A stretch of 64,000 bases of DNA from contig CM060733.1 of NCBI GenBank assembly GCA_030704615.1, positions 59,024,001-59,088,000 of the forward strand. Reading direction: 5' to 3'. How positions within the stretch are numbered: the first letter of the stretch is position 1; every line of letters starts with the position of its first letter. A program made the position numbers and the translations under genes. This DNA is from Takakia lepidozioides (Eukaryota; Plantae; Bryophyta). Below, in pieces: positions 20,633 through 40,342 of this stretch. A model generated the notes under the pieces. The model saw only the letters and a program-made list of their open reading frames with translations. It was not told the DNA's origin and made no database searches.

Positions 20633-23600
20633 ATGGCGAGCACCGGCTTGCCATTGCGAAGTGCAAATTTGGAGTTGGGTTTAGCAGGCTCCAATGCCAT
20701 GATGTTGCGGGGAAGATTTAGATGCCGGTGCAATGGAGCAGTGCATTTACTGCTGAGGAGAACGCTAGTGTGGAGAAGGCCCCTGTTTCTGTCCTCCGCT
20801 CTCCTTTCCCTGCCTCTTTCTCCTCAATACAACCCTTGCGTTTCTCTCAATTCTTCTTCTTCTCGGAGTGGGAGGGTTGCACGAAATGTGGGAAAGGGAG
20901 GTCAGTTGCTTCAGGGAGCGCACCAGCAATTCTGGAGAAGATCGTCCAGCTTTCGCGCTGCAGGTATGACAGCATTCATTTGTAATTTTTCGAATGCTTA
21001 AGAGCTATCTGGCGACTGGTTCCCCGCAATTCTATCTTCATGGGCTGCAGAGCAGTGACGGACTCTCACTCTATCACATGTATTTCAGCTTCCAGCGAAA
21101 CTCAGGCCCCTGCGGAATTCGCCAAAATCTTTGATTTTGCTTCTGAAGAGCGGCTTTACAACTGGTATGTGTCTCTTTTCCTTTGTCGAATTTCGCGGTG
21201 GTTGCAGTCTCGAATGCAAGGAGACTGGATTCATAGTGACGTTGTTCTCTAGTGATGGACTTGCACGTCCGACCCCAGGATCTTAACAACTACGGGGTTC
21301 TGACTTCAACGTGAGGACTAGAACGATGAGGTCAAGCAATTGTCATGGATAGATGAAGCTCAGCTATGTTATGGAAAGTAATTTCCAACCGATTAATGTT
21401 TAGTGGAACATGAATGTCAGGTGGGAGGCGCAAGGCTATTTCAAGCCTGATGCCAATGGTGAAGGAGAGCCCTTTGTCATTTCAATGCCACCCCCCAATG
21501 TAACAGGAGCTCTGCATATGGGTCATGCTATGTTTGTAACTCTTGAGGCGAGTTACGAAAACCAAGAATGTGAACTAGTGTTTTGGAGACTTTTGAAGCT
21601 TACTGTGTGCCTCACAAGTGGCAGAATTGCTTGATAAAGTTCCTCTAGTTGTAGTACTCTGGTTCTGTGTCTTCTGAGTGGTGTGATGCACAAATTATGT
21701 GTCATTTGTGTGGATGAGTGGTTAATGACATTGTTTGTGAAACCCAATCTGTCTTTCCACTTTTACAGGTGAGCAGCTACCATGACCAATCTGTGTTTCT
21801 ATACTTCCTGGCTTTCAAAGTAGTTGGACACCCCAACTTGTAGGCACTGAAGCAATGGGACAAATTTGGTTGGCAGGATATTATGACACGCTTCTGGCGA
21901 ATGAGAGGCAGGCCTACATTGTGGTTGCCTGGCACAGACCATGCTGGAATTGCTACTCAGGTTCGCCTACCAAGTTCTATGTCCTTATGAGATTCACAAA
22001 TATGTACTGGTTTTGACTTCTCATTTTCAGTGGAGTGGGATTGGTCAGCAGATGAATTCAATTTTGCCCCTCTGTGTGCCTGTATGTGTTTCTCTCTCAA
22101 GGCAATGAAACTGTCTATTTCTCAATTCTTTTATAGTTGCATCACCCATATATAAGGGCACCCTGCGGCTGGAGGGATCTAGAAACAGACAAGGATGCTT
22201 ATGACTATTAGAGGGGAGGACTAACCGGCCGGCTGTTGAAAGCAGTTGGTGGTGGAGAAAATGTTGGCCACACAAGGTATCAAGAGAATGGAGCTCAGTC
22301 GAGAGGAATTTGTGAACAAAGTTTGGGAGTGGAAAGAGAAGTATGTGAAATTCCTATTTCCATCAAAAGTTCATGTTGATTCTTTCCCTCTACTAATTAA
22401 CCCCACATGCCTTGTGGGTTTCACATCCAGCATCTTGTCACTTGGAAAGCAAGTAGCAGATGTCTCGTAGTTGGCATATTGTTTTCATTTCTCGACTGGC
22501 AAGTGTTGTTATGGCCTAAGTCTGTTGGCCAGCAACTGCTAGTTGACATACAAGTCCAGAAGGTTCACAATGATGCAACAGATTTGACAATGAAAGTGAG
22601 CTATTTTCTAGTCATTTTTATGATCAACATAATATGTTCCAATGCCAACTCAATCAAGTTAATGGAGTGTAGGTTTCCTGGCGCAGCAAAGGTAGTTGTA
22701 AGAGTAGCTGAGCCCAAGGCACATGAATTGTGTGGCAGGTATGGATGTGCTATCACAAATCAACTGCGAAGATTGGGGGCTTCCTGTGACTGGACTCGGG
22801 AACATTTTACTCTAGATGATCAGCTGAGTCGTGAGTTTTCTTCCCGATAGCCAATCAGGCTAAGACGCGGTTTGTAGAAATGACAACATCTATTAGTTGA
22901 ACTTCGTTCAAAAAACATTTGCTGATGTGTAGCCACATCACACAAGGAGAGTACATGTGTCTTGGCATCTTATTTTGAGCTAGGAGGACAATTTGCAGTG
23001 AATGATTTATTTGCAAAGAAAACAACCCAGCTAGGCTCACACACATAACATTGACCACCAGTGACCGAAAGTGAGATATCAGACATTGCCACTATTTCAC
23101 TTGCTATTGATGAATGCCATTATTGCTTAATTCTAGGTCCAAACTGTCCTTCCCATTACTACCTTTACAATGTACATGGTAAGCTCGAAGAGCTTGTGGA
23201 AAAAGGAACGACGATAGAACAGTGGAGCCCCCAACAACCAGCCACCGCAACCTTAAAACTACGTTTCAACTTCTAGAGATACGTAAGGTGGGGACCCTCA
23301 TGTGCATAGCAGCTGAGAAACTAGTTGATCATAGTTGCATCATGCATCAAATACGGAATCTAAGTACGAGGGTGGTCACTGATTTGTGTTGGATATGTTG
23401 CATAGGGGCTGTGTTGGAGGCTTTTGTCCATTTACATGAGAAAGGCCTCATTTATCGCGGTATGAATCTTTTCCTCTCTAAGATGGGAATTTAAGCTCAT
23501 TAGGCTCCCAATTATAATTGTGATGATTGTCGTCCACCTTCCAAATGAAAGTCTGTAGTCATTCGGGGTGAAGTGACACCATGCGTTATGCATAGTTCGG

Positions 23601-39900: not shown

Positions 39901-40342
39901 GGAATTTGTCAGTGTGTCCCTTTGTGTCCCTGCAACCAGTGTTGGTAGATGCATTCGCCAGGTAACTGTTTTCAAGTCTTCCAGCAGAATCGAACGACAG
40001 ATAAGATACTGGCGTACCTGCAGCGCCAAAGCTGGAAGTTCTATGCCAAGGTTGTTGATGCCCTCCCTGAAAAAAATGACCTCCAATTCGCACATTTCGT
40101 GAAACCTTTTGACTCCGACAAAGAGGCGAATTAACAGAAACGAAAGGGATGCATTGACGAGGAAAGGGAAGAGAAAGAGCGGAGAAGAGAGACAGGGGCC
40201 TTGGCGATCCTGGAGTTCTCCGCAGCAGTGAATGCACTCCTCGATTGCACCGACATGGCACTCTTGTCCGCAGCATCATAGCAAGGGAGTTTGCCCAACC
40301 CAACTCACAATTCACGCGCCATGGCAAGCTGCTGCCCGCCAT
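36959..40342 (-). CDS. TlyA/YqxC-family rRNA 2'-O-methyltransferase (S4 + FtsJ domains) with a ValRS-derived N-terminal extension
   Basis: Exons 40342-40018, 39881-39809, 39094-39003 ([27 protein letters not shown]), ~38700-38597 (GKVMVDG..PKYVCR), then [51 protein letters not shown] and [13 protein letters not shown]; stop at 36959-36961. Confidence 0.93.

Follow-up and report, generated by a model that had tools for sequence, protein, structure and literature searches.

Documented targeting peptides whose origin can still be read from DNA are few, and most of them belong to genes freshly moved from an organelle genome. The mitochondrial presequence of plant cytochrome c1 was acquired by exon shuffling and is related to exons of GapC (Long et al. 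1996, PNAS 93:7727, PMC38815, followed here as it is recounted in PMC7456531). In Populus, rpl32 obtained its transit peptide from a duplicated Cu-Zn superoxide dismutase gene (PMC8018952), and similar cases are described in Passiflora (PMC7488351). Here we describe a locus in Takakia lepidozioides, on contig CM060733.1 of assembly GCA_030704615.1. The 64,000 nucleotides analysed (positions 59,024,001 to 59,088,000 of the forward strand) are called the window, and coordinates below are positions within it unless another contig is named. The window is nuclear DNA and contains a gene for a bacterial-type, organellar valyl-tRNA synthetase (ValRS) and, next to it on the opposite strand, a gene for an rRNA methyltransferase of the TlyA family. 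The reading we favour, at a probability of roughly 0.85, is that TlyA has at its front end a copy, made at the DNA level, of ValRS exons 1 and 2, inverted and in frame, that it is spliced to TlyA exon 3, that it replaced an older presequence, and that it serves as an import signal. An earlier note, made from the letters of the window alone, had proposed a similar history.

When the window was compared with itself by blastn, only one match was returned, and no third copy of the block was found in the window. The match pairs 20599-21167 on the plus strand with 40372-39806 on the minus strand, in 585 columns at 70.4% identity (E 4.5e-65); the duplication is confirmed as real, far beyond chance. 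The donor block (20599-21167, plus strand) begins in the ValRS 5' leader, ~34 nt before the ATG, covers exons 1 and 2 with the intron between them, and stops 3 nt into intron 2. The recipient block (39806-40372, minus strand), delimited by the same self-match and by pairwise alignment, is its inverted copy and now forms the 5' end of TlyA. Homology between the two genes is confined to these N-terminal exons, the rest being unrelated (valS in one case, TlyA in the other).

ValRS exon 1 (20633-20963, plus strand) encodes a presequence of 110 codons, with 15 arginines, 16 serines and one acidic residue, and is followed by a phase-1 GT..AG intron of 125 nt (20964-21088, plus strand). Exon 2 (21089-21164, plus strand) encodes a linker and the first residues of the mature enzyme and is followed by a phase-2 intron. 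The corresponding parts of TlyA, all on the minus strand, are exon 1 (40018-40342), a ValRS-derived presequence of 108 codons that opens with ATG 40342; intron 1 (39882-40017), 136 nt long; exon 2 (39809-39881), a decayed copy of the mature ValRS N-terminus; and intron 2 (39095-39808), the 714-nt fusion intron. Intron positions and phases are equal in the two copies: in each, the first intron is phase 1 and the second phase 2.

The exon-1 peptides of TlyA and ValRS can be aligned over their full length, with 59% of the amino acids identical and two gaps of one codon each. At the nucleotide level the copies are 76% identical in exon 1, 75% in exon 2, 55% in intron 1 and 50% in the 100 nt past exon 2, compared with 44 ± 5% for random unrelated 100-mers of the window. 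Three indels separate the exons of the two copies, each of 3 nt, and intron 1 has gaps of arbitrary length; exon indels in multiples of three, together with exons at 75-76% against an intron at 55%, amount to coding constraint in both copies. As the copy keeps intron 1, in the same place and phase (125 and 136 nt), the copying took place at the DNA level and was not retrocopying. The dS between the copies is 0.37, which suggests that the event was not recent. All this agrees with the earlier note, which had read the exon-1 peptides correctly and had described the inverted repeat, the exon-2 match with its shared intron positions and phases, and the whole-codon indels. Its proposed check by dN/dS gave a less clear answer, as the ratio of 0.75 (bootstrap 0.48-1.24) is not formally distinguishable from neutrality; the exons are nevertheless better conserved than the intron. 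Loose constraint is usual for presequences.

The chimera is transcribed. We aligned to 36500-40800 the contigs of two public runs that come from different studies, and each run has one contig that skips eight minus-strand GT..AG segments, including 40018>39881 (intron 1, joint 39881/40018) and 39809>39094 (intron 2, joint 39093/39808 with the cut at +1), the latter being the junction that the earlier note had predicted. We take these contigs to be transcripts of this locus because all eight introns are gone and one contig continues into the 3' end of ValRS. At the fusion point, TlyA exon 2 (..AACTG/, the slash marking the splice site) meets exon 3 (G CTG CCA AGA AAG) in frame. The exons were searched one at a time and were joined in silico for two purposes only, to check the frame and to estimate dN/dS; with the exons spliced, the open frame runs for 1206 nt, or 402 codons. 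In ValRS the junction reads AACTG/GT..AG/GTGGGAG and in TlyA AACTG/GT..AG/GCTGCCA, both introns being phase 2, which places the junction at an intron of compatible phase in donor and recipient alike. The in-frame join of exons 2 and 3 was therefore correctly foreseen, and the case in which the two are never spliced together, which would have spoken against the proposal, did not occur. The chimeric TlyA mRNA is real and in frame, with the first 62-70 nt of the proposed coding sequence uncovered. Upstream of exon 3 the TlyA frame is closed at 11 nt, and exon 3 itself has no in-frame ATG before the S4 domain, so that a complete TlyA needs the upstream exons. A possible alternative start is the in-frame ATGATG at 40279-40274, which both copies conserve as AMMLR, and its use would still leave 86 codons of borrowed exon 1.

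Several smaller observations concern the same transcripts. Run X1 has an extra in-frame 3-nt insertion in TlyA exon 1 after 40045, a second TGG on the coding strand that gives QQPWWHR, and the borrowed presequence thus shows a length polymorphism in one sequenced individual. Among the TlyA introns, intron 2 alone has additional contigs of low depth in both runs (39147-39317, ~39411 and 39563-39729), at 3.5-5 compared with 12-23 for the exons; the fusion intron may be spliced slowly, or a minor transcript may arise inside it. A short open reading frame in intron 2 with a presequence-like start (ATG 39709) has no donor in a phase that would fit exon 3. Finally, a contig of 214 nt and depth 30, seen in run X1 only, lies at 40505-40718, 160-380 nt upstream of the TlyA ATG. 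No joint between it and TlyA was found, and it could belong to the PPR gene next door (discussed below) as its leader, or else be a transcript that lacks annotation.

To place the two copies in order, we considered relatives of each gene. A metagenome scan with ValRS exon 3 returned 80 loci, and in more than 20 of these, from several plant types, the peptide FDF[SAT][SA]EE[RHK][IL]Y[NK]W stands directly upstream of the exon-3 homologue. The claim that FDFxSEERxYNWWE is the conserved start of mature organellar ValRS, which the earlier note had treated as established, thus holds across these plant contigs. The phase-2 donor and its acceptor, AACTG/GT...AG/GTGGGAG, follow the peptide identically in a moss genomic contig (L014) and in an angiosperm-like one (L032). 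Among plant ValRS contigs, the best matches of TlyA exon 2 are their NFDFSSEEHLYNW segments, and the TlyA copy of the motif has drifted from the ValRS consensus, as expected if it no longer serves ValRS. When exon 2 was set, in an anchored comparison, against the ValRS of E. coli only, the result was not significant (P 0.075), and short-peptide scans of exon 2 against NCBIfam and PDB gave no match, the query being too short.

The presequence can be followed into moss as well. In a spliced moss ValRS mRNA (L008), the presequence (MASVELLGHAAMRNCRCPGGALH...) is colinear with window ValRS exon 1 in a semi-global alignment (z 3.9, ~1 in 1000 shuffles), and also with TlyA exon 1 (z 3.0, 7 in 1000 shuffles); the gap settings of this test were our own choice. 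Local Smith-Waterman comparison of exon 1 with the moss ValRS presequence gave marginal values (P 0.12 and 0.03). Intron 1 of the moss ValRS, located by setting the genomic L014 against the L008 mRNA, is in the same place as in the window and has nearly the same junction, GCAG/GTA...TTTCAG/CTTCCA, with the exon ending in GCAG/GTA in both.

For TlyA, a word search with exon 5 led to the genomic metagenome contigs L001 and L003-L005, which we take to be peat moss, and to the Logan contig L002. In addition, a complete mRNA contig of 1403 nt from a JGI sample (L006) encodes a moss TlyA of 325 aa (P0266) with S4 and FtsJ domains. P0266 is 77.6% identical to the window TlyA over exons 3-9, and the homology starts exactly at exon 3, at P0266 residue 66. 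Its presequence of 65 aa is unrelated to the window copies (semi-global z below 0 for both). The splice acceptor before (L/V)(P/R)(R/K)K, which is LPRKK in the window, is also present in L001 and L002, and the intron used for the fusion is therefore old. Nothing resembling window exon 1 rose above shuffled controls in L001, L002 and L004 when the 1-8 kb upstream of TlyA exon 3 were examined. A weak tblastx match at L001 5913-5996 was dropped, as it runs through stop codons. The moss TlyA showed no ValRS homology in the 10 kb flanking it on each side, which argues that the tail-to-tail neighbourhood is not general among bryophytes; in one sample, TlyA and ValRS are on different large contigs (L005 and L014). 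The comparison of TlyA N-termini and synteny that the earlier note had suggested thus shows a moss TlyA with an unrelated presequence and a moss TlyA locus with no ValRS nearby, not the N-terminus found in the window.

The moss and other plant ValRS genes carry the module, and the moss TlyA P0266 is without it. Because the moss ValRS has the module with its introns and the moss TlyA does not, the two-exon module is native to ValRS and the TlyA copy derived. On the sequences compared, the module is older than the split of the window lineage from the compared moss. The direction from ValRS to TlyA, as the earlier note had it, is thus upheld by the motif, the shared introns, the colinear moss ValRS presequence and the moss TlyA that lacks the module. 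Wider searches for the presequence returned nothing of use: a profile search with the exon-1 peptides against 1.84 billion representative proteins gave three matches, all repetitive or spurious, and neither a word-index search with both exon-1 open frames nor the first metagenome scan with the presequence gave any. The presequence is not a widespread domain, and these blanks say little on close relatives, as the collections are without any close relative.

Taken together, the most probable course of events is as follows. After the window lineage had split from the compared moss lineage, at least 570 bp of genomic DNA, with the ValRS start codon, the presequence exon, intron 1 and exon 2, gave rise to an inverted copy that came to lie on the 5' side of TlyA. 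ValRS intron 2 and the old TlyA intron before the first S4-domain exon are both phase 2, and for this reason the copied exon-2 donor splices to TlyA exon 3 in frame. The predicted product of 402 codons opens with ~108 aa from the presequence of ValRS, continues with ~25 aa that comprise a linker and the decayed N-terminus of ValRS, and ends in a complete TlyA. A shorter, unrelated presequence, as in the moss TlyA, was thereby replaced by the borrowed one.

The borrowed segment is rich in arginine and serine and nearly free of acidic residues (13 R, 1 K, 0 D, 1 E and 14 S in 108 aa), and we infer that it acts as the organelle import signal of TlyA. The chloroplast is most likely the destination, since the predicted rRNA targets of the plant enzyme are there and the Arabidopsis ValRS orthologue is mainly there. 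Chloroplast rRNA has Cm1358 and Cm1935, the pair of 2'-O-methylcytidines introduced by TlyA in bacteria, and a plant TlyA homologue, AT3G25470, is the proposed enzyme (bioRxiv 10.1101/2024.06.14.598963). The bacterial-type ValRS of Arabidopsis, AT5G16715, has been placed mainly, perhaps only, in the chloroplast (PMC13308715). The dual organellar targeting entertained in the earlier note found no supporting result, and a ValRS perhaps confined to the chloroplast does not favour it.

Several points weigh against this account. ATG 40342 lies beyond the transcript contigs, which reach only 40272 and 40280, and transcription of that ATG is not covered. The run records only guess that the material is RNA, with the splicing arguing for RNA; the dN/dS estimate given above sits within the neutral range; and the orthologues reached are those of mosses and more distant plants only. 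The contig ends, the dN/dS not significantly below 1, and the additional contigs found in intron 2 and in no other intron would also suit a history in which the borrowed exons are transcribed and spliced but are a mere 5' leader, with translation starting further down or the mRNA starting inside intron 2. We consider this very unlikely. With the frame closed just before exon 3 and no ATG ahead of the S4 domain, a start in intron 2 would yield a protein that is cut short and lacks a presequence; the depth of the spliced form is 4-6 times that of the intron pieces, and no other joint into 39094 appeared. In addition, the frame has stayed open over 133 codons despite four indels, all of 3 nt, and the exons are far better conserved than the intron. 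The opposite direction of transfer, in which ValRS took its N-terminus from TlyA, or a third gene supplied both, would be compatible with the two copies in the window, which alone give no direction. It is made extremely improbable by the exon-2 motif, conserved with the same intron at the start of ValRS in many plants, and by the moss genes, in which the presequence and intron 1 of ValRS match both window copies and TlyA has neither. Had a second organellar ValRS paralogue been the donor, the transfer would still have gone from ValRS to TlyA.

How the borrowed copy of ValRS exons 1 and 2 came to lie in front of TlyA is a further question. Staggered breaks produce inverted duplications at Drosophila inversion breakpoints, and the layout here is similar in that two short inverted copies flank a larger segment, although the resemblance is one of layout only. 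A single staggered-break inversion might have turned both gene bodies, with the cut through the 5' end of ValRS filled in on both sides to leave inverted copies at the ends. The copy on the TlyA side would then be the original, with the old ValRS promoter, and ValRS would sit on the new copy behind the former 5' region of TlyA. The inverted duplicates do lie at both ends of the segment, exactly at the outer limits of the block of two convergent gene bodies, and no transposon-like terminal repeats flank the copy on the TlyA side; our search for transposon footprints, terminal repeats and Rfam families around that copy found none. Nevertheless, such an inversion requires TlyA and ValRS to have been convergent neighbours already, and in a moss they are not within 10 kb of each other. 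It would also leave an essential ValRS with only ~34 nt of its own upstream sequence, and no relic of an older TlyA first exon was found left of 20599 or elsewhere in the window; a remnant of the moss-type TlyA presequence was likewise absent from the window. A local inverted duplication, by template switching into the first intron of TlyA, explains the same layout equally well. We therefore regard the inversion as doubtful, and find it unlikely that one such event doubled the 5' module of ValRS and at the same time passed the original promoter and presequence of that gene on to TlyA, with ValRS staying on the new copy. If it were true, two chloroplast translation genes would have been rewired together, and plants would have a record of a chimeric gene and a swap of regulation arising in one event. 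The suggestion in the earlier note that re-inversion between the copies would exchange the N-termini is not favoured, as homologous exchange is unlikely between copies whose longest shared identical run is 16 nt.

The identities of the two genes are supported along their length. ValRS is read as a gene of many exons, from ATG 20633 to the stop codon at 36421-36423 (20633-36423, plus strand), with 36274-36420 as its last open piece and its 3' end covered by a transcript contig of 3.35 kb. Its exon pieces give valS, tRNA-synt_1 (PF00133) and Anticodon_1 (PF08264) matches. TIGR00422 and PRK05729 are the best matches for four separate pieces (profile positions 17-58, 260-310, 391-456 and 649-698), and one piece also matches 1GAX, the ValRS of T. 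thermophilus. The valS profile is thus matched along the length of the protein, the HMGH motif and an anticodon-binding domain are present, and the gene product belongs with the bacterial-type valine-tRNA ligases. Exon 3 (21421-21547, plus strand), which lies outside the duplicated block, corresponds to valS profile positions 17-58, to residues 27-60 of T. thermophilus ValRS and to E. coli ValRS from W18. This exon seems to finish ..CTCTTGAG, followed by GCGAGT (window 21545-21555); if the next exon begins at GATATTATG (~21879), the intron between them would be a GC-AG intron, as predicted from the genomic letters. The gene spans 16 kb, partly because one of its introns contains two long overlapping open reading frames of 329 and 321 aa at 29552-31242 (plus strand).

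TlyA has nine exons on the minus strand, from 40342 to the stop codon at 36959-36961. Exon 3 (39002-39094), the start of native TlyA, carries the S4 domain, and it is here that homology to the moss P0266 begins. Exons 4-9 with the stop codon occupy 36959-38698; singly they are 38698-38597, 38389-38231, 38022-37894, 37752-37665, 37391-37348 and 37154-36962, with six GT..AG joints seen in the two runs. The exon pieces match FtsJ (PF01728, E 2.7e-16) and TIGR00478 (tly, E 2.1e-22, exon-5 piece), with an S4-type match on the exon-3 piece, and these profile scores are under the whole-protein cut-offs only because exons were scanned singly. An N-terminal S4 domain followed by an FtsJ domain is the architecture of the TlyA family rRNA (cytidine-2'-O)-methyltransferases, to which we assign the protein.

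The two genes are convergent, tail to tail, with ~540 bp between their stop codons (36421-36961). In run X2, a transcript contig of 2749 nt extends from TlyA exon 1 across the intergenic stretch and past 36500 into ValRS, and because of this continuation the ValRS and TlyA mRNAs probably overlap in antisense at their 3' ends. On the other side of TlyA, 1 kb from its start and divergent from it, is an intronless PPR gene (41417-43777, plus strand) that encodes 786 aa of the PLS/E type without a DYW domain. An exact look-up of this protein gave no record. The top database matches, which come from the lycophyte Diphasiastrum, are no more than 53% identical to it, and the PPR protein is for that reason useless as a synteny anchor.

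Acquisition of a targeting peptide by exon shuffling is an established category, and at the level of sequence the TlyA/ValRS pair falls within it. What this locus adds is that the donor is beside the recipient, the copy still shows the donor intron and a stub left from the mature donor protein, a chimeric mRNA is present, and outgroups give the direction. It would also indicate that a protein already equipped with a presequence can swap it for another, which bears on the exchange of targeting signals and on changes of destination. With one plant carrying two related N-termini, each on a different cargo protein, the locus makes a simple experimental system.

As in cytochrome c1 and GapC, the targeting region is on separate 5' exons common to two unrelated nuclear genes and is joined through a phase-compatible intron. 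The present case differs in that ValRS and TlyA are adjacent, the copy is inverted, the donor intron is retained, and the N-terminus of the donor's mature protein has been carried along. ValRS and TlyA would, moreover, both have been organellar already, so that this would be the replacement of a presequence and not, as for cytochrome c1, a first acquisition. The likeness to rpl32 and superoxide dismutase is that a transit peptide was obtained from the duplicated 5' part of a nuclear gene for a plastid protein. In the rpl32 cases, however, the borrowed peptide rescues a gene newly moved from the organelle, whereas TlyA is a long-established nuclear gene that has a presequence of its own in other bryophytes.

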